This document shows, in pieces, positions 5,427 through 46,644 of a DNA stretch of 64,000 bases. The notes under the pieces are model-generated. The model was not told where the DNA came from and did not search any database. It worked only from the letters and a program-made list of their open reading frames with translations. The position numbers were made by a program, and so were the translations under genes. The DNA lies in sequence record MW460245.1. One strand, written 5' to 3'. Numbering within the stretch: position 1 is the first letter of the stretch; each line of letters starts with the position of its first letter.

Positions 5427-6037
5427 GTATTAGTCCAGTAGTGTTCACCCACTTGGTGCCGTCAAACGTCGTAGGTATAACACCTCCGTTGAATCCCGCA
5501 ACTGGATGTTTCGTGTTCCAGGACGTGCTGCGTGGTCTGTATGTCCAGAAAACAGCAGCACCTGCAACGCCTAAGCTGGTTGGTTACGTGCCTGCCTACA
5601 GCGACACGTTCGGTGGCATCAAGCAGCTTGCACGCGAACTTGATGTGCGGTTCAACCCTCAGGTGACGACAGGCTACACTGTGTCAGGCACAGGTGGTAA
5701 CATCACCGTCAACTATCCAGCCCTGAAGATTCTGTGGGACGGCGTGGTGCAGAACCTTCCTTCGGGCAGCACAACCCAGCAGCTTGCGGACGGGCAGTGG
5801 AGCTTGGTCGTGACCTATGCTTGGGGTCTCTCGAATCCGCAGTTCATTCAGACATCGCAGGCCGACCCTGGTGGTATATACATAGAGTTGTGTCAGGTGA
5901 CAGTAAGCGGCGGTGCAGGAACGGTTAAGAATGGTCAGGTGTCTAGCAAGTGGATGGCTGGTGTGCTGATAGCACCTAGCGCCTCTGTTGCTAACGGTGT
6001 ACCAGTAAGTGACGCCACCGGCAAGATGCCGTGGTGA
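5423..6037 (+). CDS. Hypothetical virion protein
   Basis: ATGA overlap with the previous stop; beta-rich; operon context. Confidence 0.65.
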   Translation: MSISPVVFTHLVPSNVVGITPPLNPATGCFVFQDVLRGLYVQKTAAPATPKLVGYVPAYSDTFGGIKQLARELDVRFNPQVTTGYTVSGTGGNITVNYPALKILWDGVVQNLPSGSTTQQLADGQWSLVVTYAWGLSNPQFIQTSQADPGGIYIELCQVTVSGGAGTVKNGQVSSKWMAGVLIAPSASVANGVPVSDATGKMPW

Positions 6038-6047
6038 AGGAGAATAT

Positions 6048-9000
6048 ATGAGGACCATTAAAGGCGGCCAGTACAAGGTTCAGACCAACACTGGCATCCT
6101 GACGACTGGTGAATTGGGTATCGATGCCCAAGATCATCTTGTGACGAAAGACCTCCAAGGCAACCTCGTCACGGTAGGTAATCCTGATAACAGTACGTCC
6201 ATGACAGACCTCAAGCAGCAATTCGCAGAAGAGGTCATGGACATTAGCAGCGCGAAAACATTGGGTTCCGGCTACGTGTTCCTGAACGGTACGTCCTATG
6301 ACGGTGTAGGGCTTGGCATCTATGAGTTCGAGGAACGCGATGGTCGTGTGTACGGTCTTTATGGGCGCACTGATGGCGTGAGCCAGCAAGTGTTCCTTAG
6401 TGGTGGCTTCAGCAACGCACAGGATCAGCAGTACACCACTGTACCTTACGTGCCACCGTTTCTAGTCGGTAACAGCTGGCAGGCTCAATCGGTTTGCGGT
6501 ACAGGGCTTGCATCGTTCTGCGTCCAGCTGCGCGATACGACTCCCGGAAGCACTGCATCACCTCGGTACATCTATGTCCGCCACAACAATTCGCTCATCA
6601 ATCTTGCAGGCCATTCGTATGTAGAGATCACGGACGCCGTGAACTACTACCTTCAGCAACTCAAAGGGCAAGGTCTTAACATTACTGCAGGTATCATGCC
6701 GACGGTGTCCTTGGTTGGCGAGATCATGCTGATTGCATGGGGCGAATGGTCTGAAACCTCCGCATGGCTCGGTGCATGGAACAGCCCTAGCGCCTCGATG
6801 CCGTGGACGACTAATCCCTTGCCGTCTGTAGCGGCCGCGCCTCCGTATAACCCATCTCGTTTGCAGGTGGCATCTACCAACTGGCCGGGTGGTGAGATAA
6901 CGACAGGAGAACTGCCGTCGATCATGGGTAACCGTGCTCCGGGCGGGATGAGCATCTTCAAGATTTACAACGTAGGCACTGGTCAGGTGACCGACGTCAC
7001 GTACAACAACTTTCCGCAGCCGATTATCTCTGGGTGGAGCTCAAACAACCCAGTGACGATCCTCGGGGATTACGACGACGCAGGTAACTACTTCGTTGCT
7101 CTGGGAACAGCCATGGCGCCCGGTGACGCCTTAGGCAATGGGGCGTCGAATTTCCTGATGTACAGCCTCAATCTAACGTTCAATGGGACCCCGGGCCAGT
7201 CAACCCAGGTGACACTGAACTATCCGAAGGCAGGACAGAGCGGTACGGACCTGCACTATGTTCAGGATGTGCCATTCTTGGTACCATTCAATCCGAACGT
7301 GGCTCAACCTCGGGAAGACCTGGTGTCGGATAACAACAGCCCAGTCTCTAAGTACGGTAAGCTGCCGCTGTGCGCGTACCACACAGGCTACGGGAACAAG
7401 TTCGGTAATCAAGCTACGGCAAGTTGGTACTACTCTGGGGCTATGACCTTCACGGGATTCGGAGGTGGTACGATCCTGCGAGGTGTCGTCAACAACGGGG
7501 CAGAGCGTGGTTCGAAAAATGCTGCGCGCCATAACAAAGTGCGTCAGATATGGCCCATGTTCAATGTAGTACCGCGTAGTGACTTCTCGCCGACCGGTAG
7601 TTCGATGAGCAGGGCGTTGGTAGTGCCGTCTGGCAAGGCATCGTATTACATGCCAGGCCACTTCATTGCACCTGACACTATCCTGAGTCCTTCGTACAAC
7701 AACCTGTCCCAGCTTCAATGGACAGTATCGAAGCTGCCTCCGAATTCGAATATCAACGATGCGTCGTATAACCGATTTGGTACGGCAGTCTCTGGGTTCA
7801 AGAGTCGGGTTGCTGAGTACCTTACCAATCTGCCATCTCCAGGTACGACGTCCAGCACATATGGGTGCCTGTGGTCGACGAACTTCCCGAACGGAGGTGA
7901 TGCAAGCGTATATAAGAACTTCCAATTTCCGGTGCTATCTGACGCAGGTTACAACCCTGCAGAGATCAATGGCGCTAACACGAGATATGGAGACTGGACG
8001 TTCTCGAACGGTGTGTACAACGCCCCGCCAGTGAACGGTAGTTACCACTCCAACATTCTCGGGCAGTTGGCTGCACTCAAGCCTGTCGTAATCAACGCGG
8101 CGAAGGCTGCGTACACTGATACAGGTACGACGTATCACATAGAGGTGGTGCCGGTTATCAATCAGGATGGCACTGGTGTTATAAAGGGTTTCGGTATCCT
8201 GTGGGCCCAGAGTGCTAACAATCCCAAGATTGGATTATGCACTACCTTTACGACGCCCATGGCCTCGCCTGGAGGGATCGTCCAATTTACTGATACGACC
8301 CAGTGCACCATCGTAGGGCAAAACATGGTCGTAACAAATGGCATCGCGGGACCTATACTATCGAGAGATAACTACTCGTATGGTCGTCTCTTTGTAATGT
8401 ACGCGTATGGTATCAGCTATGCAGCGTGGACTTGTCTGTCACCGCTGCATGTGTCAGGCGATGCCCTGCTCAACGTGATGTATTTCAAAGGCCCTGCTGA
8501 TTGGAGCAACGTGACATACGCTGGTTGGTGCGGTTCTCAGAGTCGCGCCATGATATCGATGAGTGCGCAACACAATGGTATGGCGAAGGTTCCGTACCGT
8601 GATGGTTTCACTGTACCTACTGCTGACGTGCCTCTTTCGTTGTATCAGGATACGGATGTAGGTGGAGCCACTTCGTTCATGGCAGGTACGATTGATAAGG
8701 CGATGCAGAATCCGTCGAACCTCATCCCAGGTGGCGATCACTCGTATAACCTGAAAGAGATGCTGACGCTGCAAGCAATCGCAGGGAACTACACGCTTCA
8801 AATCGGTGCAGTGCAAGGGCGGCTTAACCACAAGCAGTACAGCCTGCCCTCCACCTTCATCGATATGAACGACAGCGTTAAGTTCCCGCAAGGTACGTAT
8901 TACCTGTACCTTGTAGATCCGCAGGATGGTACACCTGTTCACTTTGAGGTCGATACGGCACAACGACCTGAATCGAATACCAATATGTACTTTGGTCGCT

Positions 9001-9140
9001 TCACCAAGGACGCGCAGTCGTTCTCGAATCAGGTGTCAGTATCAGAAGTCGTGAGGTTTGGAACAGCACGCCTCGCAAACGACTCATCAAACAAGAAGGT
9101 TCAGGGTTCCAGCATTCGTGTTGGTCCTTATGTAGGTTAG
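6048..9140 (+). CDS. Large (~1030 aa) putative tail fibre/receptor-binding protein
   Basis: ATG 6048 after GAAGGAG; N-terminal LTTGELGIDAQDHLVTKD motif; G/S/T/N/Y-rich beta composition. Confidence 0.65.
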   Translation: MRTIKGGQYKVQTNTGILTTGELGIDAQDHLVTKDLQGNLVTVGNPDNSTSMTDLKQQFAEEVMDISSAKTLGSGYVFLNGTSYDGVGLGIYEFEERDGRVYGLYGRTDGVSQQVFLSGGFSNAQDQQYTTVPYVPPFLVGNSWQAQSVCGTGLASFCVQLRDTTPGSTASPRYIYVRHNNSLINLAGHSYVEITDAVNYYLQQLKGQGLNITAGIMPTVSLVGEIMLIAWGEWSETSAWLGAWNSPSASMPWTTNPLPSVAAAPPYNPSRLQVASTNWPGGEITTGELPSIMGNRAPGGMSIFKIYNVGTGQVTDVTYNNFPQPIISGWSSNNPVTILGDYDDAGNYFVALGTAMAPGDALGNGASNFLMYSLNLTFNGTPGQSTQVTLNYPKAGQSGTDLHYVQDVPFLVPFNPNVAQPREDLVSDNNSPVSKYGKLPLCAYHTGYGNKFGNQATASWYYSGAMTFTGFGGGTILRGVVNNGAERGSKNAARHNKVRQIWPMFNVVPRSDFSPTGSSMSRALVVPSGKASYYMPGHFIAPDTILSPSYNNLSQLQWTVSKLPPNSNINDASYNRFGTAVSGFKSRVAEYLTNLPSPGTTSSTYGCLWSTNFPNGGDASVYKNFQFPVLSDAGYNPAEINGANTRYGDWTFSNGVYNAPPVNGSYHSNILGQLAALKPVVINAAKAAYTDTGTTYHIEVVPVINQDGTGVIKGFGILWAQSANNPKIGLCTTFTTPMASPGGIVQFTDTTQCTIVGQNMVVTNGIAGPILSRDNYSYGRLFVMYAYGISYAAWTCLSPLHVSGDALLNVMYFKGPADWSNVTYAGWCGSQSRAMISMSAQHNGMAKVPYRDGFTVPTADVPLSLYQDTDVGGATSFMAGTIDKAMQNPSNLIPGGDHSYNLKEMLTLQAIAGNYTLQIGAVQGRLNHKQYSLPSTFIDMNDSVKFPQGTYYLYLVDPQDGTPVHFEVDTAQRPESNTNMYFGRFTKDAQSFSNQVSVSEVVRFGTARLANDSSNKKVQGSSIRVGPYVG

Positions 9141-9226
9141 TGTTTGAAGTGGTAGAGAAAGGGTGGGCTGAGTCCCAACTAGGTCCACCCTCCCTTTAGG
9201 AGTTCCCTCTTGTGCCGGAGGTGTAT

Positions 9227-10738
9227 ATGAAAAAGCTGTTGCTCGTGTTGTGCTCTCTCGTTGCTCTAAACGGATGTGGTGGTGGAGGTGGTGATACTCC
9301 TGCCCCAACTCCTCCCGTTAACCCTCCTGTAGTGACACCGCCGCAAACCGTGTACGGTCCGGACGGTTGCACGCCAGCAAATGCCACAACGATGATGGCT
9401 CAAGGTGTTGAGGCCATCAAACCATTGCGACCCAATAAACAGGTCGTGTCCAAGCTGATCGTGAAGTACAAAGATGAGGCACAAGCACCGAACAGCGTGG
9501 CAGCGGCTATGGCCAGGTGGTCTAGCAGCAACGCGAATAGCAACATACGCCCGACAGCTATAACGCAGCAAGGTCGACATGGGGTAGACCTAGGAGATGG
9601 CGTTAGCGTTCAGGATGCAGAGACGTTTGCTCGGGAATTGGAGAAGGATCCCAACGTGGTGTATGCGTCACCTGATTACATCATGAAGTCTCAGGTTCTA
9701 GAGCCTAACTTCACGTCGATGGAATGGCAACTAAGCGACCCGCTCTATGGTGTAAAGGCACTGGATGCGTGGACGTTGTCGAAGGGTGATGGCGTGACGG
9801 TGGCCGTAATCGATACAGGTTACCTTGACGACAGGAACTCGACGAATGATAACACGGTGAACGGTGACGTAACGCCTAACCTGTTGCTTCCAGGCTATTC
9901 GTTCATCTCACGTCCTGAGGTGGCGAATGCTGGAGGCTTCACGCGAGGACCTAACGCGCTGGACACTGGGGATTGGGTGACGAAGGAGGAAGTGACCACG
10001 ACGGGTTCACCGTTCTACGGATGCGAACAGCAGAACAGCATGTGGCATGGCTTCAACATTATGTCCCTGATCGCGTCGGTGGATGACGGGGTGAACATGG
10101 TGGGGATCGCACCGCATTCGAAGGTGCTACCTGTTCGTGTGACGGGGAAGTGTGGGGCGTCGAATAGCGATCTGATCGACGGCATGCGATGGGCAGCGGG
10201 TTTGCCAGTTGCAGGTGCCCCTCTGAACACGCAGCCTGCTAAGGTGCTGAACCTGTCGCTCGGTAACTACTCGCAGTGCAGCAGCGCAATGCAGGCTGCC
10301 GTGAATGATGTGATTGCTGCTGGTGTAACGGTCGTGGTTGCTGCAGGTAACGACAATCAGCCTGTGTCGTCGTTCAGCCCTGCCAACTGCAAAGGGGTTA
10401 TTTCTGTAGGGGCAACGACGAACCGAGGTCTGCGCGCATGGTTCAGCAACACTGGTGCAGACATCATGGCACCGGGCCAAGCTGTAGCATTCCGCAGCAA
10501 TCAGGGTGCTACGACGGCAACGACCTTCTGGAATCGCACTGGTGACGGCACGTCGTATGCTGCACCTCTGGTTGTTGGTACTGCTGCATTGATGCTGTCG
10601 GTGAATCCTAAGCTCACACCTGCACAGGTCAAGGACATTCTGGTGTCCACTTCTGCACCGAAGAGTACGTGCAACGCGAACTTCGGTGGTCAGATGAACT
10701 CGTATGCGGCAGTGCTGAAAGCCATGAACACGCATTAA
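9227..10738 (+). CDS. Lipoprotein subtilisin-like serine protease (S8)
   Basis: GGAGGT RBS; signal MKKLLLVLCSLVALNG-C followed by GGGGG and a Pro-rich linker; I9-like prodomain; catalytic D (VAVIDTG), H (WHGFNIM), S (GTSYAAP); oxyanion N (AAGND); VLNLSLG. Confidence 0.9.
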   Translation: MKKLLLVLCSLVALNGCGGGGGDTPAPTPPVNPPVVTPPQTVYGPDGCTPANATTMMAQGVEAIKPLRPNKQVVSKLIVKYKDEAQAPNSVAAAMARWSSSNANSNIRPTAITQQGRHGVDLGDGVSVQDAETFARELEKDPNVVYASPDYIMKSQVLEPNFTSMEWQLSDPLYGVKALDAWTLSKGDGVTVAVIDTGYLDDRNSTNDNTVNGDVTPNLLLPGYSFISRPEVANAGGFTRGPNALDTGDWVTKEEVTTTGSPFYGCEQQNSMWHGFNIMSLIASVDDGVNMVGIAPHSKVLPVRVTGKCGASNSDLIDGMRWAAGLPVAGAPLNTQPAKVLNLSLGNYSQCSSAMQAAVNDVIAAGVTVVVAAGNDNQPVSSFSPANCKGVISVGATTNRGLRAWFSNTGADIMAPGQAVAFRSNQGATTATTFWNRTGDGTSYAAPLVVGTAALMLSVNPKLTPAQVKDILVSTSAPKSTCNANFGGQMNSYAAVLKAMNTH

Positions 10739-10742
10739 AGGA

Positions 10743-10780
10743 AAAGGCGACGCCTCCAATCAAGGGGACGTCGCCTTTCT
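10743..10780. terminator. Bidirectional intrinsic terminator
   Basis: AAAGGCGACG...CGTCGCCTTT inverted repeat between the convergent protease and exonuclease genes. Confidence 0.8.
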
Positions 10781-10786
10781 TGCCTT

Positions 10787-11725
10787 CTACTTGCCGATGA
10801 GACCAGCAAGACCCTTAGACTTCGGGTACAAGAAGTTCATGTACTCGTGGTACGATGCACTCAGATTCTTCACCTTCGTGACCTTGGATACCTCCGTTTG
10901 CCTCAAATCAAAGGGAGGCAGCACATCGGGTACAAGGCGCACGATCTTCCGATTGCGAACCAGCTTCGCCTGATGCTCAGCCAGAAAGCGCTTATCAGCC
11001 TTCGACGCGCCTTCGTGCCACTTCTTGAGCGATCCCCACTCCTTCAACTTTGCCGCAGCAGTCTTGGGCCCGTATCCAGGGAGACCGTCAAGATTATCGA
11101 TCTTGTCTCCTATGAGTGTCTGGTAGTCGACCATCTGTCGCGGTTTCACACCGAACTTGGCCACCACGTAATCAGCATCGATGTATCGCGGCTTTGGCTT
11201 ACCGTCCTTACCCTTCGCGCTGCTATCGTAGAGACGGACGTGCTTCTTCAATAGGTACTGGAATGCGTCCTTATCCTGCGCACCACCGACGAACGCGTCG
11301 AAGTACGAGGTGTTCATGACCGCATGAGCACATGAACACAGGCAGTCGTCAGCCTCGTACTTTGTAGGTTGGTAGAACGACACACCTACCTTGGCAAGTG
11401 CCTCAAACAACTGAGGATAATACTGGTACAGGTCGTGACCTTCCTCGTCGTCATCCTGCACCACAACGACCTTCCCTCCCTTCTGCTTTGTCTCTCCTCG
11501 GTTCGCCTTGTAGCCCTTGAATACCTTGTGGCGGAACACCTTAGGGCCGTCGAAGGCTACAACGATGTGAGTAGCACGGATTGCTAGAGCGTCTTTGAAC
11601 AGCAAAGACAGGAAGTTCGAGATGAGTTTCTTACCGAAGTCATACTTGGTCTTGGTAGTGTGAGCGCACCTATGCAAGTACCAATTCCCGTCTACAACAA
11701 ATAGGATCTTCTTTCGCTTGACCAT
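10787..11725 (-). CDS. 5'-3' exonuclease / flap endonuclease (PolA N-domain, T4 RNase H-like)
   Basis: LFVVDGN, VAFDG..FRH..F.GYKANR, YEADD, DKD, LIGDKIDNLDGLPGYGPKTA motifs. Confidence 0.92.
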   Translation of the reverse strand: MVKRKKILFVVDGNWYLHRCAHTTKTKYDFGKKLISNFLSLLFKDALAIRATHIVVAFDGPKVFRHKVFKGYKANRGETKQKGGKVVVVQDDDEEGHDLYQYYPQLFEALAKVGVSFYQPTKYEADDCLCSCAHAVMNTSYFDAFVGGAQDKDAFQYLLKKHVRLYDSSAKGKDGKPKPRYIDADYVVAKFGVKPRQMVDYQTLIGDKIDNLDGLPGYGPKTAAAKLKEWGSLKKWHEGASKADKRFLAEHQAKLVRNRKIVRLVPDVLPPFDLRQTEVSKVTKVKNLSASYHEYMNFLYPKSKGLAGLIGK

Positions 11726-12203: not shown

Positions 12204-12596
12204 ATGGACAATCAAGAAGTGTTCACCTATCCTCTGACCACTTACGCTGCCGTGTTGGGGGTGGCCGCACTTGCAGGTATCGTGAGATACATAAACACAA
12301 AGGAGCCTTTCAAGTGGAGTCACTTACTGCGCGATTGCGTAACGTCAGGGTTCAACGGACTCGTTATGTTCTGGGTCTGCGACTACAAAGAGATCACTGG
12401 GTCGCTCCAGATGGTCTTCGTCGCCGTTGCCGCTATGATGGGGGCGCGTGCCTGGGCAGAGATCGAGAACTACCTGCGTATGCGGTATGGGAGCGGAGCC
12501 GTGAAGCAAGTTGATGAGCAGCTTGATAAAGTCGAGCAGACAACAGCAGAAGGTACCGATCAACCGCCGGCGGACTCGAATGAGGCCCAAAAATGA
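12204..12596 (+). CDS. Holin (LydA-like, about 3 TM)
   Basis: Hydrophobic segments YAAVLGVAALAGIVRY, VTSGFNGLVMFWVC and MVFVAVAAMMGARAW; acidic tail; upstream of the endolysin. Confidence 0.75.
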   Translation: MDNQEVFTYPLTTYAAVLGVAALAGIVRYINTKEPFKWSHLLRDCVTSGFNGLVMFWVCDYKEITGSLQMVFVAVAAMMGARAWAEIENYLRMRYGSGAVKQVDEQLDKVEQTTAEGTDQPPADSNEAQK

Positions 12597-13078
12597 CTAA
12601 CACCAATATCAGCAAGCTCACGCACGACGTAACGGCGCACGGTAAGACATTGGCCGCCCGGTTGTATGGGGTCATGTCAATGCTGTCCGTTGTCGTCCTA
12701 TTTGCATTCGTTGTCGTGTGGCTGCTGCAACAGCCTAACTTCTCCTTCGTGAGACAGGGAGTGCAGCACTGGCAGGTCAGTGAAGGACAGACTTCTAAGG
12801 TCGACCCTTCGCTGATCTTAGGAACAGACCTGAACAAGGCAGCCTACTACATATGGATTGGAGACGAACAGGGGCACCAGGTGTATCGGTACCCTACCGT
12901 GATTATCGAGGAACCGCGTAAGCTGGAATTCGGCAATCGACTGGTAGAGCTTCCTGACACTCTCAAGCCAGGTCAGTACACAATGAACGCGCAAGTCTAC
13001 TACCGCCTGAATCCCCTCAAGGTTGCTGAGATGAAGTTGGAGCTCGCAAAGATCACGGTTCAACCTAGAACCCGCTGA
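12593..13078 (+). CDS. Single-TM membrane protein with beta-rich domain (lysis cassette)
   Basis: TM LYGVMSMLSVVVLFAFVVVWLL; C-terminal PGQYTMNAQVYYRLNPLK is shared with the next gene. Confidence 0.7.
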   Translation: MTNTNISKLTHDVTAHGKTLAARLYGVMSMLSVVVLFAFVVVWLLQQPNFSFVRQGVQHWQVSEGQTSKVDPSLILGTDLNKAAYYIWIGDEQGHQVYRYPTVIIEEPRKLEFGNRLVELPDTLKPGQYTMNAQVYYRLNPLKVAEMKLELAKITVQPRTR

Positions 13079-13086
13079 TAGGAGAT

Positions 13087-13512
13087 ATGATGAAGGCGTT
13101 AAAAGCCAAACACGTAATCGGGGTTATCGTCTGGGCGTTGGTGTTCGGTCTAGTGACATCAACCGTCAGAGCGTGGACCACGGAGACCCCAGCTTCACTG
13201 GATGTTAAGAGTGTGGTGATCAACATGAATCGGAACGAAGCTGTCCAGATTCCTGTGCCTGAAATGAACCATGCTTATACAGTAGAGGTCTACAGTGTCG
13301 TTGATCCCATTCCGAAGGATGATCGCGATACAGTGATGTCTACTCCTCGGATTGTGTACAAGCAGGGCTATGCAGAGTTGTCGCAGGTGATGATACCTCC
13401 GCTACTTGCACCCGGTACTTACACGGTGGTCTTGCATGTGTCGTACCGACTCAATCCGATGAAGCTGGTCCAGCAGTCTGCATTGATAGCTGTTTTGATA
13501 GTGAACTCGTAA
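13087..13512 (+). CDS. Membrane/secreted paralog of the preceding gene
   Basis: N-terminal hydrophobic segment; PGTYTVVLHVSYRLNPMK. Confidence 0.7.
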   Translation: MMKALKAKHVIGVIVWALVFGLVTSTVRAWTTETPASLDVKSVVINMNRNEAVQIPVPEMNHAYTVEVYSVVDPIPKDDRDTVMSTPRIVYKQGYAELSQVMIPPLLAPGTYTVVLHVSYRLNPMKLVQQSALIAVLIVNS

Positions 13513-13528
13513 TCTTAGGAGCACCCTC

Positions 13529-14182
13529 ATGGCTTTCCAAATCACCGCTGCGCAACTCGCTGCGTTCGCCCCGTCCCTCAAGCAAATCGAACTGCTGCCG
13601 TATGTTCAAGCCATCAACGCAGCGGCAGCGAAGGTAGGCATCGATCAAAGCGCACGTCGGATGCGCTATTTCATGGCCCAGTCCTTCTTCGAGACGAAGG
13701 GCTACATGAAGTGGGATGAGAACTTGGTCTACACCACGCCGCAGCGTCTCGTGGACGTGTGGCCCTCGCGCTTCACGATGGACAAGAGCATTACGTCCAA
13801 GGCGTATGCGCCTGACTTCGTGAACAACCCAGAGAAGCTGGCGAACCAAGTCTACATGGGACGTTACGGTAACGTAGCCCCTGGCGATGGTTGGAAATTC
13901 CATGGTCGGGGTGCTTTCCACCTGACGTTCCTGAACAACTACAAGACCTATGGTTTGTGGGCGTACAAGGATCCGCAGAAGTTTGTGAATGCGCCTGACG
14001 ACGTGAACCTGATCGAAAACAAGTTCATGAGCGCCGCGTGGTTCTGGCAGAACAACTCGCTGGGTGCTATCGCAGATGCGGACGGCTTCACGAAGATGAC
14101 TGGTATCATCAATGGTTCGACGGACACGGTACCTCAGCGTCTGCCTGTCCTGAAGACCGCTAACACGATCTTCACATGGTGA
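13529..14182 (+). CDS. Endolysin, glycoside hydrolase family 19
   Basis: FMAQSFFET, ENLVY, PEKLANQVY.GRYGN...GDGWKFHGRGAFHLT..NNY, SAAWFW, INGS: typical phage GH19 motifs. Confidence 0.9.
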   Translation: MAFQITAAQLAAFAPSLKQIELLPYVQAINAAAAKVGIDQSARRMRYFMAQSFFETKGYMKWDENLVYTTPQRLVDVWPSRFTMDKSITSKAYAPDFVNNPEKLANQVYMGRYGNVAPGDGWKFHGRGAFHLTFLNNYKTYGLWAYKDPQKFVNAPDDVNLIENKFMSAAWFWQNNSLGAIADADGFTKMTGIINGSTDTVPQRLPVLKTANTIFTW

Positions 14183-20795: not shown

Positions 20796-21932
20796 ATGGC
20801 AGCACGACAATTCGTGGTCGCAGCGGAGAGCTTCGACATATATTCGAACGGGAACCTCTCAACAGACTACCCGTGGTTCATAACCAACGCGGCCCTCACG
20901 CCGCAAATCAACATCAACGCCGGTGCGTTCAACCAAGGCGCGCTGACGATGCCGACGGTTGGTGCACCTGCAGCTTTGACGTCAGGTGCTGAGTATCAGT
21001 TCCCAAGCACCATGCAGCTCCTTCGAGGAAGCACGCTGGCTGGTACCAAGTCCCTGTTCGCTTTCAGCGGATGGCTGAACGTCAACAACATGGGCAACGG
21101 CAACGGTACGTTGCTTGGCCTCGGTAGCACGCTGAACAGCGGTGTTGCCTACCCGCTGCTGAACATTAGCCAGAGTGCCACGTCTGGTTTGAACCTGCAA
21201 TTCGTGACGAACATCAACAGTCCGACTAGCACGCCGTTCAACTTCAACCTGGCGCTAAACACGTATTACTGGATCACGCTTGCATTCAGCTTCGAAGGGA
21301 CTGCGGCTGGCAGTGGTAGCCTGAAGGCATCGTACTTCGTCAACGATACGCCGCTGCTACAGAATCAGCAGATTGCATGGACTTCGGATATCTTCATTCA
21401 GGGCCAGCCTGCGAACCGTCTCAAGCTGTACGGTGCGAACTTCATCAACTACTTCTGGGATGACTGGGTTATCCAGTGCGTGAGCAGCGCTGATCCCGAA
21501 TGGCCTGCACCTGCTACCGTTCAGCCTGATGTGCTGCCGCATATCCCGGCGCGACATATCCAGGTCTATTCGGCGGTCGGACCTGGTTCGCACGCTGAAT
21601 GGCAATCAGACGCAGGTGAACCGAACTGGCAAGCCGCAACTGATCCTACCGGATTGAAGTACGTGGTAGCGAATGACCTGGGACTCCGGGATACGTACAA
21701 GTGGAGCGGACCGGCAATGAACGACATCCGAGGCGTGGTGTTGCGCAGCGCGTCGCAACGATACCAGAACGTGATAGGTGTATCCCAGCCTCAGGGCGCC
21801 ACTGACGTAAAGCAGCCGACGAAGGTTGGTAATGGGCCCTCGCACGCTATTAGCGTCCTCGAAGACGACGGCACCAATCAATGGACAAGTGCAACTCTGG
21901 CAGCCGCTGAATTCGGCTTGCTGTCCAAGTAA
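20796..21932 (+). CDS. LamG/concanavalin-like virion protein, paralog A1
   Basis: ESFDIY N-terminus, YYWITL..., WDDW, NWQ, W..A C-terminal pattern shared by four paralogs. Confidence 0.6.
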   Translation: MAARQFVVAAESFDIYSNGNLSTDYPWFITNAALTPQININAGAFNQGALTMPTVGAPAALTSGAEYQFPSTMQLLRGSTLAGTKSLFAFSGWLNVNNMGNGNGTLLGLGSTLNSGVAYPLLNISQSATSGLNLQFVTNINSPTSTPFNFNLALNTYYWITLAFSFEGTAAGSGSLKASYFVNDTPLLQNQQIAWTSDIFIQGQPANRLKLYGANFINYFWDDWVIQCVSSADPEWPAPATVQPDVLPHIPARHIQVYSAVGPGSHAEWQSDAGEPNWQAATDPTGLKYVVANDLGLRDTYKWSGPAMNDIRGVVLRSASQRYQNVIGVSQPQGATDVKQPTKVGNGPSHAISVLEDDGTNQWTSATLAAAEFGLLSK

Positions 21933-40479: not shown

Positions 40480-42387
40480 TTACTGCACAATCTTACGGGT
40501 CGGATCGTTCAGCGTCAGGCGCTGTTGACGTTCAGCGTATTTGACCGTTACCTTCAAGCTGCGCAGGAAGTTGTAGCGGATCGGCACCTCAGCGATGGTG
40601 TTCGGCGGGACGGTACTCGGATCAGGCTGTAATGTGCCTTTGTCCTCGAACGACAGCTGAGTCGCAGGGAACTTCGCAAGCAGACCTGCGTTGTCCCCAG
40701 TACGACCCCACAGGTGATACTCCACTGCGTCCTGAACCGGCGGCCATTGAAGCATAATGCTGCGGTCAGGTAGCGTCGTGATAACCTGTGGGAACACCCA
40801 GTTCGAAGGCGGGCCTTCCTCGGTGTAGGTCTCACCTGTTGCAGGATCGAGCAGGCGTTTCACTACCGTGCTTATACTATAGGCGTAAACCTTTTCACCT
40901 AGCATACCACCACCAGGGATGATGGTGTACGTGATCTGCGGACTCTCCGGAGCCGTCACCAACATAGGGCCAGTCGGATTATTTACTTCGACATACGACA
41001 CCATGCCGGGGGCTGCACGCTTAGCCGTGCCGTCCAGGTCAGATGGATAGAAGTTCGTCATCAACAGACCGGGGCGCGGCGAGAACAACTTGATGATGGC
41101 CTGCTCTACAGCAAGCTGCACCTGCAAGGGATCAGCACTGTTGAACACATAAACCGTGAGGTCAACGTCACGAGCGATGGCGATCGGATCCTGCCAGATG
41201 AAGTACGGCGCGTACATCGTCACCGTCTGCATGTAGTCGCAAAAGTCTCGCTTCTGCTGCTGCGTCCAACCAGACGTAACGCCAATGCCTGTGCTAGACG
41301 GTGTGTCAGTCGTCGTCAACCCAGAGACACGGATGATGTTCATCCACTCCAGCTTGCGCGGATTGATCTCGCGCTGTGCCTGCGTAATCGCATCAACGAT
41401 ACCCGGGTAGGTGGCCACCGTCGCCGTGTACTGGGACTTGGTAACTGCCGACTGATACGTGCCAAGCGATCCGCTCGCCACGTTCTTATAGACGATAACG
41501 TCCTTGTCGTTCGCACCGCCCTTCGGATTTATATCGACCACGCCAGTGAGACCGCTGATAGTACCAGCCGTAACCTCACGACCGATGATGGTCATGTTGT
41601 TGGCGTTCGCACCAGTCGTCACTGCATACTTGATGACCACTTTATCGTTCGGCTGCGGCACGCTACCGAACTGTTGGCTACCGAACTGAATCAGCAGGCG
41701 TCCGTCAGCAAGCGTCAGGTCGGAATACGCAGGCAGCTTCTTGTAGTTCCACAGACCGCCAAGAGCCTTCGGCAGTGTTACGTCATTGAGCTGCACCTGC
41801 ACGTCCTGATCAGAGATGACGAAGCCATCCTCCTCAGCCACGTAGGTTTGCAGGTCAGTGCCAGGGATGTCACCATCGATGATGACCGTGTTCACCTGAC
41901 CTTGGTACAGCGGAACATTCGGATTGATACCCTTCTTCAACGACAGCTGGGTGCGGTTGAAGAAGTATTGGCCACCCGCATTGAACTGAGTCAGAGGAGC
42001 GATATCGATATCAGCAGGCATCGTGATGGTTGCCGTGATCTGCGCCGGCAGGTACCGCGTCAAGCGGAGACCTTGCATCTGGGCGATCGAACGGATAGCG
42101 TCATCACCTTGTGCCGTTTCAGCGAACACATCCTCGAATGCACGCAGCAAGCGGCCACTCATGAACGTTGCAATCGACGCATCGAGGTCAACCAACGTAG
42201 TGGACGTCTGGATCGTCAGGTTGCCTTTCCACGTCGGCTTCTTCTCCAGGTACGACTCCATCTGACTTTTGAAGTCATTGAAGTCGGTGGTCAGGTCACT
42301 GAAGATGAGTTGGTTCGGGTTGACTGTAGGGTCTACGGCTGGTGCGCCGACAGCCGGGTCAGCAACCAGTTGGGTTGAATCTGCCAT
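40480..42387 (-). CDS. Baseplate wedge protein (T4 gp6 / P2 J-like)
   Basis: SDLTTDFNDFK, ETAQ...IRSIAQMQG, NPKGGA, AVTKSQY motifs of gp6/J. Confidence 0.8.
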   Translation of the reverse strand: MADSTQLVADPAVGAPAVDPTVNPNQLIFSDLTTDFNDFKSQMESYLEKKPTWKGNLTIQTSTTLVDLDASIATFMSGRLLRAFEDVFAETAQGDDAIRSIAQMQGLRLTRYLPAQITATITMPADIDIAPLTQFNAGGQYFFNRTQLSLKKGINPNVPLYQGQVNTVIIDGDIPGTDLQTYVAEEDGFVISDQDVQVQLNDVTLPKALGGLWNYKKLPAYSDLTLADGRLLIQFGSQQFGSVPQPNDKVVIKYAVTTGANANNMTIIGREVTAGTISGLTGVVDINPKGGANDKDVIVYKNVASGSLGTYQSAVTKSQYTATVATYPGIVDAITQAQREINPRKLEWMNIIRVSGLTTTDTPSSTGIGVTSGWTQQQKRDFCDYMQTVTMYAPYFIWQDPIAIARDVDLTVYVFNSADPLQVQLAVEQAIIKLFSPRPGLLMTNFYPSDLDGTAKRAAPGMVSYVEVNNPTGPMLVTAPESPQITYTIIPGGGMLGEKVYAYSISTVVKRLLDPATGETYTEEGPPSNWVFPQVITTLPDRSIMLQWPPVQDAVEYHLWGRTGDNAGLLAKFPATQLSFEDKGTLQPDPSTVPPNTIAEVPIRYNFLRSLKVTVKYAERQQRLTLNDPTRKIVQ

Positions 42388-42396
42388 AGGAGAACC

Positions 42397-42831
42397 TTAT
42401 TGAGGTTGTTGCTGTTTGACCTTGACCGTGAAGTCTGCGCTTGCTGGCTTGCCAGTGATGACATAGAAGTAAGCTATACGGACACGGTACCCAGGCAGAT
42501 TGTAGTCTGGCTGGACGAAGGTGTTGTTCATATCGAGCTTGATCCGAGGCTCCCAGCGTTGAATGCTCTGGATCATTGCGATACGCATCGAAGCCGCCGT
42601 GATGTCATCAAGCGGCTCCTGAAGAAACTGGTACCACATGCTGCCAAACTCTGGCTCGAAAATTCGACCACGTGCCCCGATAGGGCAGTTCAGCAGATTA
42701 GGCAGACCGCATATCGACACTGCTGCCTCGTCAGGCAATCGGTCAGGCAGCGTCGTTACGGTGAAGCCAGGGTTCTCGTCGATATAGACCGCGCCTAAGA
42801 GCGAGGCCTGCGCTACGGTTAGGCTGGCCAT
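42397..42831 (-). CDS. Baseplate wedge gp25/GPW-like protein
   Basis: G.R.RIFEPEFGS...FLQEP.D....I..SIQRWEPRI. Confidence 0.85.
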   Translation of the reverse strand: MASLTVAQASLLGAVYIDENPGFTVTTLPDRLPDEAAVSICGLPNLLNCPIGARGRIFEPEFGSMWYQFLQEPLDDITAASMRIAMIQSIQRWEPRIKLDMNNTFVQPDYNLPGYRVRIAYFYVITGKPASADFTVKVKQQQPQ

Positions 42832-42840
42832 TTAGGATCC

Positions 42841-43464
42841 TCATACGGGAATGGGAAGATTGATGTTCAGTTGCTGGTACGCCACGCGCCAGTGAAGCTG
42901 GTTGAAGTACACATCGGCCATGCGCGCCTTACCTGCCTTGTCCTTGATGGGCTGCGTCAGGAACAGTTGATCGTACATATGCCGCTGCAAGGTCGAGGTC
43001 GTTGCATCCTGAACGGCCTTCATCTTTTTAGTATCTTCGACTCGACCTGCATCAGTAAGCGCAAGATCCTGAGTCATTTTGTCACTGGTGTATGTGGTCG
43101 CTGGCGGAACAGGCACTACCAAGTCATTGTACCAATTGATCGGACGCGTCTGTGGCTTATCCAAGAAACTGTTGCAGTTGTAGATGCGGAAAGCATCCAT
43201 GTTAGGTTCCTGCGACGTATCCGTACCATACATGATGCCTGTTACTATGTATCCATAGGTTCCAAGCATGAAATTCATTACATCGCCTGTTTTGTCGTAG
43301 CTCTGCCAGCGATTCAGGCTGTCGGCAAGCTGTTGAAACAGAGGGCGCCAACCTGTGGTGCCTTGGTTCGTGTAGCTCCAGTTTTCTTGATCGGTAAGGG
43401 CGTTGTACGTGTCGAGGCGATAGTTCCGCAGCCAGAGCGGAATGACTGATTGAGGATGTACCAT
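42841..43464 (-). CDS. Hypothetical protein (baseplate operon)
   Basis: 207-aa ORF with GAGA RBS in a tightly packed operon. Confidence 0.7.
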   Translation of the reverse strand: MVHPQSVIPLWLRNYRLDTYNALTDQENWSYTNQGTTGWRPLFQQLADSLNRWQSYDKTGDVMNFMLGTYGYIVTGIMYGTDTSQEPNMDAFRIYNCNSFLDKPQTRPINWYNDLVVPVPPATTYTSDKMTQDLALTDAGRVEDTKKMKAVQDATTSTLQRHMYDQLFLTQPIKDKAGKARMADVYFNQLHWRVAYQQLNINLPIPV

Positions 43465-43471
43465 GGTGTTC

Positions 43472-43774
43472 TCAGTTGCAGAAGGTGTCGTCAGAACCAG
43501 TCATCATCTCGTAGTTACCAGGGCCTGACGTTTGCCCCATATCACCTACGCGCGAGACACCAGGGCCCATTGCGAACGTGTTTTCACTACCGATGAGTTG
43601 TTCCGTCGTATGGCCGCACGATGCGATCCCAATCGAAGAAACGAAGCCTGTCGGTTGACCATTCGTTGTCACGGTATCTGCTCCAGTCAGGATCTCTACC
43701 GTAACGTTCTGGGGTGTGTCGTGGCCATAGCAAATGCCAAAGCCAAGGTCACCTACGCGCACGACTGCTGGCAT
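43472..43774 (-). CDS. PAAR-like spike-tip protein
   Basis: AVVRVGD...CYGH...GADTVTTNG...SCGH...GS..V..G..RVGD. Confidence 0.8.
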   Translation of the reverse strand: MPAVVRVGDLGFGICYGHDTPQNVTVEILTGADTVTTNGQPTGFVSSIGIASCGHTTEQLIGSENTFAMGPGVSRVGDMGQTSGPGNYEMMTGSDDTFCN

Positions 43775-43784
43775 CTTAGACTCC

Positions 43785-44285
43785 TTAAGCTGGGTTGAGT
43801 TGAATAGTTGTGCCCTTTATGATGATGTTCCCACCACCATCGAAGGATATGTAGGCACCGCTTGAATGCGTGAATCGGAACGTGCCGCTCGCTAGATCGA
43901 CAACCAGCTTGTTTCCCTTGGGGTCCTTGAAGCCCCACACTGAGGGGCTCTTGAACTCATCAGGCACGTCATCCTTGTTCAGCACGCCACCGATGTACGC
44001 TGGATAGTTCGGGTCACCATCCTGCAGGATGACGGTCACCTTCGCACCCGGTTGTGCGGCTCCGTACATACCGAAGCCTGCACCTACACCGAACAACGAT
44101 TGCTTGAGCTGACCGATCCATGGCACATCGCCTGCGTCCATGTCGAACAGCCCAGGCACATGCGCCTTCACCATCCCTGTTCCGTCAGGAGATACCTGAC
44201 GCACAGTACCTAAGTACCATCGACCTTTTGCTTCATCCCCTTCTTCAGGCTTCAGCAAGTCATTGAGAGCAACGAAGCCACTCAT
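43785..44285 (-). CDS. Central spike (gp5/gpV OB-fold) protein
   Basis: YLGTV....D.TG.VKA.VPG...PW...PG.KV.V..QDGDPNYP.YIG followed by a beta-helix. Confidence 0.8.
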   Translation of the reverse strand: MSGFVALNDLLKPEEGDEAKGRWYLGTVRQVSPDGTGMVKAHVPGLFDMDAGDVPWIGQLKQSLFGVGAGFGMYGAAQPGAKVTVILQDGDPNYPAYIGGVLNKDDVPDEFKSPSVWGFKDPKGNKLVVDLASGTFRFTHSSGAYISFDGGGNIIIKGTTIQLNPA

Positions 44286-44294
44286 ATAGACACC

Positions 44295-45416
44295 TCATGC
44301 GGACACATAGGGCTGGTTTACGCCCATGCGCGAAATGAAAACCTTCTCCGAGTAGGTAGCGCCTTCCACGTAGATTGCCTTACCAGTCACTACGTAGGTA
44401 CCGCTGTACGCTGCGTCCTCAGTCTGCTTCTCTGTCTCCGTGGAGAACGTGATGACATCGAACATGTCCATGTAGGACTGACCGAATATCTGACACGACA
44501 GCTCTAGCGAGTACAGGGATTCGAACCGTGCGTTCTGGTACGCAGCACGCTCGTAATTCGGATGCACTGTCCCGAAGTTGATCGGAGAATGGGTGATGCG
44601 GCCACGCTGCACCTTTTCTTTCATCGTCTTGCTGAACAAGGGACTACGCGAGTCAGCCTTGAACTGCAGGTCTGATAGCACCAACCCCTTACCATCCGCA
44701 GACTGCACGAAGCGGTTGTTACCATAGCCTTCTGAAGCATTCGAGAAGCCAGAGCCGGCCAGAACCTCGTAGTCAACAGCAGACGCTGCACCTTCTACGA
44801 TTTGGTGGGCGATGATCCGCTTCTTGGAGTCCTGTAAGCCAAGGATGTTTCGATACCGCATGTTCCCTTCAAGGTCGATGCCCCAGCGCATGAAGGAATC
44901 ATCGCCTGCGTAGGCGTGCGCCTCAATCTCAGACGCCCAGGCATGTTGCTTACGGTTCCCAGGCATCCACGTCATGCTGTCATTCGTTTTCCAGCCGCTG
45001 TATTTCAAGCCGTTTTGCTGAGCCAGCATAGACAGCGCACCGTCTGACGTGCCAGTGAAACCTGATACTGCGGTGCCTGCCCAGAAACGAGGCGCATCGA
45101 AATAGCCGTCCATCTCGTAGGCGAATGCATCGCCCTCGAACGTCCGCTTATGATTGAACTTACGGAAGTTGTAGACGCGCGTAGGTCCACCACTACCCTT
45201 AACTGCGATCTTGATGGGTATCGCGTCCTGAAGGTTGATCTTATCCAGCGAATGACCTGCATCGGTAACAGCGAAGTGACACGTAGGTACGCGGAACTTC
45301 ACCGACTCCGCCATGTGCAGGAACTTCATGACGTTGAAGGAGTCCAGACCGAGAGGGAACTCCACGCCATTGATGAACAGGGACAGCTCTATCCGGTCTG
45401 TTACGATGTAGCCCAT
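44295..45416 (-). CDS. Baseplate hub protein (gp27/gpD-like, putative)
   Basis: Size and position between the LysM/gpX-like gene and the spike gene. Confidence 0.55.
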   Translation of the reverse strand: MGYIVTDRIELSLFINGVEFPLGLDSFNVMKFLHMAESVKFRVPTCHFAVTDAGHSLDKINLQDAIPIKIAVKGSGGPTRVYNFRKFNHKRTFEGDAFAYEMDGYFDAPRFWAGTAVSGFTGTSDGALSMLAQQNGLKYSGWKTNDSMTWMPGNRKQHAWASEIEAHAYAGDDSFMRWGIDLEGNMRYRNILGLQDSKKRIIAHQIVEGAASAVDYEVLAGSGFSNASEGYGNNRFVQSADGKGLVLSDLQFKADSRSPLFSKTMKEKVQRGRITHSPINFGTVHPNYERAAYQNARFESLYSLELSCQIFGQSYMDMFDVITFSTETEKQTEDAAYSGTYVVTGKAIYVEGATYSEKVFISRMGVNQPYVSA

Positions 45417-45417
45417 G

Positions 45418-45756
45418 TCAGATAGTCATCGTCGGATTGTTGTTGTTCTGCTGACGCGCGATGTACGCCAGCATGTCTGGCTTGGACGGTACCATCAGCT
45501 TCAAGCCTACGTCCACATCGGAGATTGCGTCGTAGATACCGTTGTATGCCAGCAGCGCACGCCACAGAGAGGTGTCCCCGTACAGGTTGTAGGAGAGTCC
45601 AGGAAGATTCGCCATGTCGGCTTGAGTGATCTCGTAAATCTTCGAGGCAGGAACGGAGAACCTCAGATTCTTGTAGGCGCTCTTGAACACGTTCGGAAAC
45701 GTTCCTACGCTGTCAGGAGGCGTGTACCTTGAATAGTTGTAGTCAGAATCAGCCAT
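45418..45756 (-). CDS. LysM/gpX/gp53-like baseplate protein
   Basis: YEI...D..NL..LSYNLYGD..LWRALLAYNGI.D......G..L.VP. Confidence 0.75.
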   Translation of the reverse strand: MADSDYNYSRYTPPDSVGTFPNVFKSAYKNLRFSVPASKIYEITQADMANLPGLSYNLYGDTSLWRALLAYNGIYDAISDVDVGLKLMVPSKPDMLAYIARQQNNNNPTMTI

Positions 45757-45765
45757 GACGCCTCC

Positions 45766-46644
45766 TTATTGGAATAAACCAAGCGCGCCGCTCACCAGTG
45801 CAGAGCCAAGCTTCGCACCAAGTGCGTTCCCTGTCACACCACCACCTGACATGAAGATGGTATCCAGGTCAGCCTGTGTAATCATGAACAGCGGTTTAAA
45901 GCGAACGCTCACCTTCACGTGGTGAGGATACTTGGTGATTGGATCGAGGTTCGATACGTAGGTTTGCTGGACGTTTGTGATGACTACGCTATCAAAGAAC
46001 ATGTAGTTCCCGATCTGGATGCTCACCTGGTTCTTCACCTTCGACTTCCAATATGCTGCGGTACCCAACCCATTCTTCAGGGCGTTGCTCTGCCCTTTAC
46101 CGTCAGCCGTCGATCGGCTACTGTCATTCAGGGAGGCACCCTTCACCTTCTCACCTGCCTTCTCCAGTTGGTCCTTCACCTGGGTCGCCTCACTGGCGAT
46201 CTGGGTAGATGCGTCTGTCAAGATCGACGCTGCATTGGCGAACGACGAATCGAGTTGAGGACCGGGAGACTTCAGGAGGCCAGTAGCCGAATCAGTGAGC
46301 GGAACAATCAGCTTGTTCAGGTCAAGGATCGGCTTCCGAATGTCCATCAACGGATCAGTCTCCGTTTGGAACTCCAGCTCAAGCCCGAGCTCTGTATCGT
46401 TCGTACCTTGCCACAATTGGGCAGTCATGGCTTGAACTGCGGTGCGAAGGCCGATAGCAGCCGTTGCCAAACGCAGCATGTTATTGCTGAACAGACCTTG
46501 GGCGAACGGTGCTTCATAGTTCGAGGACGTGTCGAACACAAAAGACTCCGGCATTGGAGCACGCACCACAATCGATTGCTGCCCTTCTGCCGGATTGTTA
46601 CTCTGAATCAGGACTTGGTAGTCCAGGTTTCGTGTTGAACTCAT
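45766..46644 (-). CDS. Tail tube initiator-like (gp48-like) protein, putative
   Basis: LWQGT...L.L.F, V.IQIG.......VVITNVQ..Y...V.V.F tube-fold pattern. Confidence 0.55.
   Translation of the reverse strand: MSSTRNLDYQVLIQSNNPAEGQQSIVVRAPMPESFVFDTSSNYEAPFAQGLFSNNMLRLATAAIGLRTAVQAMTAQLWQGTNDTELGLELEFQTETDPLMDIRKPILDLNKLIVPLTDSATGLLKSPGPQLDSSFANAASILTDASTQIASEATQVKDQLEKAGEKVKGASLNDSSRSTADGKGQSNALKNGLGTAAYWKSKVKNQVSIQIGNYMFFDSVVITNVQQTYVSNLDPITKYPHHVKVSVRFKPLFMITQADLDTIFMSGGGVTGNALGAKLGSALVSGALGLFQ

Follow-up and report, generated by a model that had tools for sequence, protein, structure and literature searches.

AprV2, AprB2, BprV and BprB of Dichelobacter nodosus, StmPr1 of Stenotrophomonas maltophilia, the gliadinase Bga1903 of Burkholderia gladioli, Pro21717, and MprA of B. 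pseudomallei belong to one subfamily of the S8 peptidases (subtilases). Enzymes of this type have an ordinary signal peptide, an N-terminal I9-like prodomain, conserved mid-domain disulfide cysteines and two C-terminal cysteines, and they are released; type II secretion has been reported for MprA. The prodomain of a subtilase is normally cleaved off and degraded by the enzyme itself. A different kind of system is represented by Llp of phage T5 and Cor of phages T1, phi80 and N15, which are phage lipoproteins that act on the host outer membrane. The T5 gene llp, for a receptor-inactivating outer-membrane lipoprotein, lies "adjacent and downstream to pb5" (PMC9586334), and Cor lipoproteins inactivate FhuA (PMC11436027). 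Here we describe a subtilase gene of Burkholderia phage BCSR5, a myovirus from sewage in Israel with a complete circular genome of 227,351 bp (MW460245.1). The window, i.e., the whole stretch of DNA that was analyzed, is the final 64 kb of this record, so that a window position is the record position minus 163,351; positions below are those of the window unless the record is named. The open reading frame (ORF) at 9227-10738 on the plus strand coincides exactly with the GenBank coding sequence QRE00302.1, which has a product of 503 residues and the annotation "hypothetical protein".

We are highly confident that a Burkholderia-type host was the source of this accessory gene, that the capture took place long ago and that the gene is intact. 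It encodes a predicted lipoprotein pre-pro-subtilase of the AprV2/StmPr1/MprA/Bga1903 subfamily and occupies, only in the BCSR5 lineage, an insertion of ~1.65 kb where the tail-fiber operon has its 3' end. The N-terminal I9-like prodomain and the mid-domain cysteines are shared with the released enzymes of this subfamily, whereas the phage protease has a lipobox in place of the ordinary signal peptide and one C-terminal cysteine in place of two. Its parts are listed here, with the evidence for each in brackets (AF2, AlphaFold2; pLDDT, predicted local distance difference test score).

9227-10738, plus strand: protease coding sequence for a predicted pre-pro-subtilase lipoprotein of 503 residues, QRE00302.1 (GenBank, Pfam and PDB matches)
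9227-9277, plus strand: predicted signal peptide and lipobox LNGC, with the Cys17 codon at 9275-9277 (sequence and homologue column)
9278-9439, plus strand: disordered Gly/Pro/Thr tether, residues 18-71, with a single cysteine, Cys48 (pLDDT <50)
9440-9691, plus strand: I9-like N-terminal prodomain, residues 72-155 (AF2, Foldseek and a weak Pfam match)
9692-10735, plus strand: S8 catalytic domain, residues 156-503, without a C-terminal extension (Pfam, AF2 and Foldseek)
9812-9814, 10046-10048, 10349-10351 and 10553-10555, plus strand: codons of the catalytic residues D196, H274, N375 and S443, respectively

The protein belongs to the S8 family, since Pfam Peptidase_S8 (PF00082) covers residues 187-487 with 150.4 bits against a cut-off of 21.8 (E=8.5e-44) and is matched over positions 1-286 of its 288-position profile. 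Among solved structures, secreted Gram-negative subtilases give the best matches, at E=3e-69 to 1e-52. Conservation was assessed by per-column counts and pairwise alignments in two sets, a diverse family alignment of 113 sequences (112 homologues and the phage protein) and the 120 closest homologues. The catalytic Asp, His and Ser are present in this order together with the oxyanion-hole Asn. The columns of D196, H274, N375 and S443 are invariant across the 112 diverse homologues, and they are invariant or nearly so in the close set, where D196 is found in 119 of 120. An AF2 model made from a Burkholderia-only alignment was poor (pLDDT 65) and was replaced by one made from the diverse alignment, which has a mean pLDDT of 84.5, a predicted TM-score of 0.84 and a pLDDT >90 over most of residues 166-503. 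In Foldseek this model aligns with AprB2, AprV2, BprV, BprB, Pro21717, Bga1903 and StmPr1 at a target-normalized TM-score of 0.85-0.89 and 36-43% identity. The range is 0.84-0.89 when AprB2 and the classical subtilisins are taken together, and thus the subtilisin alpha/beta fold is predicted. The catalytic domain holds five cysteines, at positions 266, 309, 351, 388 and 482.

In the AF2 model, residues 72-155 form a beta-alpha-beta-beta-alpha-beta unit with a pLDDT of 80-94. Foldseek aligns the pro and catalytic domains together with unprocessed pro-subtilisin E, and the prodomain also aligns with fervidolysin; the Pfam match to Fervidolysin N-pro (PF22148) is weak and below its cut-off. Because the mature N-termini of the crystallized homologues align at about residues 155-157, self-cleavage is expected near there. 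The N-terminus reads MKK, an 11-residue hydrophobic core, LNGC with the putative acylated Cys17, then GGGGGD and a Pro-rich stretch. A lipobox stands at the equivalent place in 108 of the 120 closest homologues; its cysteine column is Cys in 109, and the six residues after it are identical (GGGGGD) in 69. The L at -3, G at -1 and C at +1 all fit a lipobox. The N at -2 is seen in none of the 120, which have A (105), S (4), T (3) or V (2) there, and so lipidation or cleavage by LspA may be impaired. Glycines at +2 to +6 contain no E. coli-type retention signal; to our knowledge no sorting rules have been established for Burkholderia lipoproteins, and the E. coli +2 rule may not apply. The initial annotation, made from the DNA letters, had read this gene as phage-encoded and its product as an exported, lipobox-bearing S8 enzyme with a Gly/Pro tether, a prodomain and a complete D/H/S/N set. 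Apart from the caveats on the -2 residue and the weak Pfam prodomain match, the family, column and fold comparisons agree with this reading of the protein, and the complete circular phage record, the phage genes on both sides and the phage-like base composition agree with a phage-encoded gene.

The relatives of the protease point to its source. In a set of 5.8 billion proteins, the 120 best matches are nearly all S8 peptidases encoded on Burkholderia and Paraburkholderia chromosomes, with ~545 residues and 39-49% identity. When 1.84 billion cluster representatives were searched exhaustively with HMMER, 68,140 family members were recovered; the best single-domain cluster among them is from Burkholderia (P0018, 303 bits), with a flat plateau at <=266 bits below it. 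An example from this cluster is B. oklahomensis AJX34916.1, annotated "Extracellular basic protease precursor". The top match of the exhaustive search, a metagenomic protein of 1033 residues (P0121), consists of two tandem prodomain-plus-S8 units; its high score is a sum over several matched stretches and therefore does not indicate closer kinship. The Burkholderia lipoprotein peptidases, which have the best bit scores of all sequences searched, resemble the phage protease part by part. As in the phage protein, their lipobox Cys precedes a run of glycines and an Asp. Their tether, a long disordered Pro/Ser/Thr stretch, holds one cysteine and leads to an I9-like prodomain and an S8 domain with the same four mid-domain cysteines, and they have a single C-terminal cysteine and no C-terminal extension. 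Of the 120 sequences in the Burkholderia-type set, 104 have the Cys plus glycine-run anchor, which is absent from all 149 family representatives outside this set. It thus marks a Burkholderia lipoprotein S8 clade, and the phage protein carries it, along with the single tether cysteine and the single C-terminal cysteine. Based on these shared features, the architecture appears to have been inherited whole from the chromosomal clade and not to be an invention of the phage.

The two differ in their genomic setting. The host orthologue is an ordinary chromosomal gene that adjoins a P-type cation ATPase gene in B. cenocepacia and B. pseudomallei, whereas the phage gene follows tail-fiber genes. They also differ in composition, since the phage gene has a GC content of 55.3% and a third-codon-position GC content (GC3) of 59.3%, like its phage neighbors, compared with 71% and 90% for the host orthologues. 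This phage-like composition, unlike that of the orthologues, indicates an old capture. The same numbers bear on host DNA contamination or an assembly artifact, which the initial annotation had named as a way in which its reading could fail. All of the best matches are from bacteria of the host genus, as contamination would predict. However, the identity to host genes is only 39-49%, GC and GC3 fit the phage and not the host, and the gene has phage genes on both sides in a circular record that is complete. Contamination is thus excluded, and we give it practically no weight.

The position of the anchor raises the question of what it would hold. In the phage protease Cys17 is N-terminal to the prodomain, and because the anchor comes first, the backbone tethers the zymogen only. 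The mature enzyme would stay tethered only if a predicted disulfide between Cys48 and Cys482 exists. Hence the membrane tethering in the initial annotation stands for the zymogen and is conditional for the mature enzyme. The distribution of cysteines is consistent with such a bond. All 108 of the 108 anchor-bearing sequences, phage protein included, have exactly one cysteine in the tether and one in the C-terminal segment, which are Cys48 and Cys482 in the phage. By comparison, 86 of 99 non-lipoprotein family members have no N-terminal and two C-terminal cysteines, and two independent lipobox-bearing representatives without the glycine run retain this pattern. Among readable sequences, the lipobox is absent from these 86 members and from the MprA-type sequences P0116 and P0120; the PDB chains are mature domains only. 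The Cys48 column is at least 90% Cys in the clade, Cys266, Cys309, Cys351 and Cys388 are conserved, and the phage copy retains all six clade-conserved cysteines, i.e., Cys48, Cys482 and the four in the mid-domain. We suggest that a Cys48-Cys482 disulfide may leash the mature domain to the acylated tether.

The gene lies in an insertion between two genes that are neighbors in related phages. The features of the locus are listed here.

9141-10786, plus strand: BCSR5-specific insertion, made up of the protease gene and two flanking intergenic hairpins (synteny)
6048-9140, plus strand: last large gene of the tail-fiber module, 1030 residues, directly upstream of the protease gene (conserved gene order)
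9160-9191, plus strand: GC-rich hairpin between the tail-fiber-module gene and the protease gene (folding and sequence reading)
9218-9222, plus strand: Shine-Dalgarno sequence GGAGG, four bases 5' of the ATG (direct sequence reading)
10743-10778, both strands: strong hairpin in the gap where the protease and exonuclease genes converge (folding)
10787-11725, minus strand: 5'-3' exonuclease (FEN/RNase H), convergent neighbor and synteny anchor (Pfam 5_3_exonuc_N and 5_3_exonuc)

The insertion, ~1.65 kb in length, separates the 1030-residue tail-fiber-module gene from the convergent exonuclease gene. By tblastn the exonuclease is 46% identical to that of phiRSL1, 41% to that of BcepSauron/Saruman and 35% to that of Motura. 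These phages share an order in which a holin-endolysin cassette is followed by a divergent small gene and the exonuclease gene, and then by a convergent tail-fiber gene. At the junction BcepSauron is empty, and phiRSL1 has three small ORFs that are neither S8 nor lipoprotein genes. The 1030-residue protein has no Pfam or PDB match, no similarity to the tail fibers of phiRSL1 and BcepSauron, and no counterpart in isolated phages. In metagenomes 28 full-length homologues were found at 33-45% identity, several of them on contigs of 216-284 kb; they reveal an uncultivated family of jumbo phages that are relatives of BCSR5 and keep the local order of genes. In six of seven contigs (L013-L018) the order is identical, namely a Phage_tail_fib gene, a ~215-residue gene, a ~200-residue gene, a ~1020-residue gene and the convergent exonuclease gene. 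The ~1020-residue gene abuts the exonuclease gene in five of them, and in L016 a 97-residue minus-strand ORF intervenes. In the more distant seventh contig (L019) the ~1020-residue gene is followed by a Peptidase_S74 tail-fiber gene. The protease gene is absent from the junction in all six related contigs. Since it is missing there and in BcepSauron, the insertion is peculiar to the BCSR5 lineage.

Other phages hold no close relative of this gene in a tblastn search of INPHARED and two scans of IMG/VR. The one IMG/VR contig with an S8 gene at 41% identity is L007 (UViG 2675903129_000001; features at 5694-6818 and about 7677-9386). There the gene stands at the end of the contig, ~1 kb past an integrase of the lambda type. 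Because the gene is beyond the prophage integrase, it is probably bacterial flank included in a prophage call. The BCSR5 gene has some traits of a moron, in that it occurs in one phage only, between genes that are adjacent in relatives, and is flanked by hairpins. Its composition is indistinguishable from that of its neighbors, and the promoter scan found no promoter-like site.

The S8 fold does occur in other phage genomes, in the PHROG 3677 "protease", Bacillus phage subtilases, the "extracellular serine proteinase" of the Agrobacterium jumbo phage Atu_ph07 and cyanophage S8 domains, but these are of different subfamilies and none is close to the BCSR5 protease. Such proteins bring up the view that the enzyme is a cytoplasmic protease for prohead or tail-fiber maturation, or a component of the virion. 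The gene does adjoin structural genes on the same strand, and S8 domains are found in large structural proteins of some phages (PHROG 3677, and baseplate and tail-fiber matches in BFVD). Yet the signal peptide and the conserved disulfide cysteines argue against a cytoplasmic or virion-bound enzyme: a Sec/lipoprotein signal, six such cysteines and the full zymogen architecture of secreted enzymes are all present. Moreover, the identity to phage S8 proteins does not exceed 35% in sequence comparisons or 22% when structures are aligned, and the protease is missing from relatives that share the tail-fiber genes. We therefore consider this role very unlikely, in agreement with the initial annotation, which had set the enzyme apart from head-maturation proteases.

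Two candidates from profile searches were rejected. The best NCBIfam match is the type VII secretion mycosin family (TIGR03921, E=2e-37), at 129 bits against a cut-off of 278.75, and the phage protease has neither a C-terminal transmembrane anchor nor a type VII context. In mycosins the catalytic domain retains a bound N-terminal extension, a loose precedent for the tether proposed here. The defense peptidase IetS/IteS reaches 14.3 bits against a cut-off of 900 (NF042956), the PADLOC IetS match is one short stretch (E=2e-5), and there is no partner ATPase gene; these matches reflect generic S8 similarity.

The phage copy has diverged considerably from its relatives. In the 120 close homologues 206 columns are at least 90% conserved, of which the phage retains 140 and differs at 66, including F276, S280, N212, T306 and A311. 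At 101 columns conserved across the whole family it differs at 16, compared with a median of 4 and a 95th percentile of 10, which makes it the second most deviant of 113 sequences. Eight of these 16 positions (276, 278, 280, 284, 287, 290, 306 and 311) are within 276-311, around and just after the catalytic His. Position 276 is T in 120 of 120 close homologues and T or S in 110 of 112 diverse ones, and position 280 is G in 120 of 120 and in 111 of 112. Because the unusual F276 and S280 flank the catalytic His, protease activity should not be assumed. The initial annotation had called both the His and the Ser motif atypical. This is true of the His motif, whereas the Y444 of GTSY is within the variation of the clade (L in 85, F in 23, M in 7 and Y in 5 of the 120). 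Length differences are also seen, the first of which is listed here.

9827-9856, plus strand: phage-specific insertion of 10 residues, 201-210, just after the strand of the catalytic Asp (gap in at least 90% of 120 homologues)

This insertion is a low-confidence loop in the AF2 model. Two deletions, of 16 and 12 columns, affect the start of the first prodomain helix and the loop after the helix. The tether is shorter, the MKK-type n-region is shortened, and 17 N-terminal columns are missing.

Two readings are compatible with the changes at conserved positions, a substrate cleft that was re-tooled and a relaxation of constraint. Under the latter, the gene would be a neutral or decaying passenger, acquired by chance, not needed, and drifting. 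This would account for its presence in one phage only and its absence from all examined relatives, for its rank in deviation and the longest branch in the tree, for the atypical residue at -2 of the lipobox, and for the lack of a promoter in the sigma-70 scan. On the other hand, the 503-codon frame has stayed open despite >50% amino acid divergence and complete amelioration of composition, from which we argue for continued selection. In addition, the four catalytic residues, the six clade cysteines and the 140 of 206 conserved columns are retained, the fold is confidently predicted by AF2, and the ribosome-binding site is strong. Thus we regard a drifting passenger as unlikely.

The flanks of the gene bear on its possible expression. 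The region 9141-9226 folds at -31.6 kcal/mol (z = -2.2), and its hairpin at 9160-9191, a sequence that occurs only once in the window, may be a leaky terminator or an RNA-stabilizing element. The hairpin at 10743-10778 folds at -24.5 kcal/mol (z = -4.7) on the plus strand and at -29.4 kcal/mol (z = -5.5) on the minus strand, and it looks like a bidirectional terminator. Both hairpins were found by reading and folding; a scan for consensus terminators called none, including at 9160-9191. Upstream of the protease gene, no candidate promoter or recurring motif came out of a sigma-70 scan and two pattern searches, and the simplest guess is that the gene is co-transcribed with the tail-fiber genes.

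A lysis cassette lies 1.5 kb downstream of the protease gene.

12204-14182, plus strand: LydA-type holin, two N-terminally anchored proteins and endolysin

The two genes between holin and endolysin, at 12593-13078 and 13087-13512 on the plus strand, encode N-terminally membrane-anchored proteins that have no PHROG or Pfam matches. Their products share a 40-residue C-terminal stretch that is 40% identical (E=2e-7), and so they are partly paralogous. In most of the related contigs a single gene of ~140-155 residues is found at this place, and L018 has none.

The nearness of this cassette suggests a role in lysis, in which the tethered protease would cut proteins that tie the outer membrane to the cell wall and so aid or replace spanins. 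The predicted envelope-located lipoprotein and the distance of 1.5 kb would fit, and no other lipoprotein ORF is found in the window, lysis cassette included. To this extent the initial annotation was correct that no obvious o-spanin is nearby. The genome as a whole does have a candidate, in that an overlapping pair of genes annotated "hypothetical" on the minus strand (record 20969-21741) probably encodes a two-component spanin. Its first gene is for a 128-residue N-terminally anchored protein of the coiled-coil type, which matches four Rz-like spanin PHROGs and would be the i-spanin. The second is for a 126-residue lipoprotein that matches phrog_456 (Rz-like spanin) and would be the o-spanin. 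Measured around the circular genome, ~73 kb lie between this pair and the holin-endolysin cassette, compared with ~155 kb in record coordinates. Moreover, the six relatives (L013-L018) have this lysis cassette but no protease. In BCSR5 a strong hairpin and two genes of opposite orientation lie between the protease gene and the cassette, and the protease itself is unlike an o-spanin, since it is a 503-residue enzyme without a partner gene and outside the cassette. Due to the spanin pair elsewhere and the protease-less relatives with the same cassette, the option of outer-membrane rupture in the initial annotation is weak, and we view a lysis accessory as improbable.

We tentatively propose that the protease cleaves one or more proteins of the host envelope, preferably a receptor or surface structure. 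This is a possibility and not an expectation. In this mechanism, the gene would be transcribed with or just after the tail-fiber genes, given the shared strand, the strong ribosome-binding site and the lack of a promoter of its own in the scan. The product would then be exported by Sec and acylated at Cys17, as suggested by the lipobox and by a clade with canonical lipoboxes. It would fold on the I9-like prodomain, form its disulfides and cut itself near residues 154-157, if it behaves like its family and the mature enzymes aligned with it. Release of the active domain would be prevented by the Cys48-Cys482 disulfide, and a Pro-rich leash of ~30 residues would keep it at the membrane. Finally, and speculatively, the tethered enzyme would cleave its envelope target, which might be a receptor or surface structure used by BCSR5 itself or by competing phages. 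Superinfecting phages might then be excluded, and fewer progeny might be lost on debris. A receptor or surface structure is preferred as the target because the gene adjoins the receptor-binding module and because the substrate cleft may have been re-tooled.

In its most specific form, this proposal describes a lipid-anchored, disulfide-leashed subtilase that would act as a receptor-destroying enzyme on the infected cell and on debris, an enzymatic counterpart of Llp and Cor. By analogy, llp and the protease gene are both 3' of receptor-binding or tail-fiber genes, and both encode lipoproteins, a predicted one in the case of the protease. Llp and Cor are small, non-enzymatic receptor binders without sequence or fold similarity to the BCSR5 protease, so that lipoprotein nature and position match and size and sequence do not. 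We know of no described receptor-destroying phage protease that would be such a counterpart, and we consider this form doubtful.

Several findings weigh against the proposal of envelope cleavage and its parts. The analogy with Llp and Cor is positional only, as the difference in size, enzymatic nature and sequence makes clear. The gene is found in a single phage, is dispensable for the lineage, and carries no comparative signal of selection. The absence of a promoter-like site or repeated upstream motif and the N at lipobox -2 count in the same direction. The Cys48-Cys482 pairing is one event at the level of the clade, and it is not seen in the model, in which the tether has low confidence. 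The phylogeny is divided. The Burkholderia clade is nearest to the phage protein by raw distance and bit score, as expected for the proposed source. However, neighbor-joining trees do not place the phage protein with this clade, and group it instead with P0195 in 47 of 50 bootstraps. No terminal branch is longer than that of the phage protein (0.50, compared with a median of 0.25), P0195 is also a long branch, and it is a chromosomal protein only 37% identical to the phage protein; the grouping is most likely long-branch attraction. Lastly, a literature search found no paper on QRE00302.1, on the biology of BCSR5 beyond listings, or on the Burkholderia lipoprotein orthologue.

The enzyme could instead have kept the general function of the host enzyme, in which case the breakdown of envelope or extracellular proteins would be raised during infection and would feed amino acids to the replication of a 227-kb genome. 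The closest characterized relatives, Bga1903 gliadinase, StmPr1, AprV2 and MprA, are secreted proteases of broad specificity. BCSR5 also encodes a periplasmic binding protein of the amino acid type (SBP_bac_3; record 43467-44273, plus strand), and the B. cenocepacia orthologue of the protease is beside an amino acid ABC (ATP-binding cassette) transporter with two SBP_bac_3 genes. A link between the phage binding protein and these host neighbors was rejected, since its identity to the compared B. cenocepacia neighbor is only 27%, the general level of the family, and it adds little weight to the scavenging idea. The transporter neighborhood is not kept in B. pseudomallei. Furthermore, a lipid-tethered enzyme is badly placed for bulk digestion, the lytic cycle is short, and the many changes at conserved positions of the cleft argue against an unchanged function. 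We judge nutrient scavenging to be rather unlikely. Taken together, we place the inactivation of a receptor or surface structure first, with modest confidence. Nutrient scavenging ranks second, ahead of the neutral passenger and, last, the aid to lysis.

Other genes of BCSR5 are host-like or directed to the envelope. Record 42846-43184 (plus strand) encodes an H-NS-like protein, record 41862-42656 (plus strand) a 264-residue lipoprotein with SPFH/Band 7 similarity (phrog_200; L009/L010), and record 73359-73619 (plus strand) an 86-residue lipoprotein (phrog_902; L009/L010). Genes for GTP cyclohydrolase I and 7-carboxy-7-deazaguanine synthase (record 7783-8454 and 10018-10881) point to a pathway for DNA modification with 7-deazaguanine. 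The structural region contains, near the tail sheath gene, another gene with the annotation "endolysin" (record 139231-140223), possibly for a virion-associated lysin. The cumulative GC skew of the window has its maximum near 44 kb (~42,000-46,000) and then declines, probably because the predominant coding strand changes there. For phage Matilda, a related Burkholderia jumbo phage, the flagellum is reported as the receptor, and a "peptidase" is mentioned at its lysis locus (preprint 10.64898/2026.10.21.760668). A huge-phage envelope preprint makes no mention of subtilases.

The protease gene of BCSR5 is a real, intact, host-derived accessory gene, and it represents a known enzyme family in an unusual place. 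It is unlike the usual structural or replication genes, and it might point to a new route by which phages alter the cell surface. If it is a drifting passenger, it would be an ordinary case of host-gene capture. If the enzyme is made and active, the phage would reshape the envelope of its host by proteolysis, and not by binding or by glycan modification. On the same condition, the protease might account for exclusion or anti-readsorption in jumbo phages of Burkholderia, a group with some members under consideration as therapy against the B. cepacia complex. In addition, the analysis points to an uncharacterized and widely conserved clade of Burkholderia lipoprotein subtilases. The design of this clade is unusual, since the prodomain comes after the lipid anchor, and the mature enzyme may be held on the membrane by a rewired pair of cysteines.

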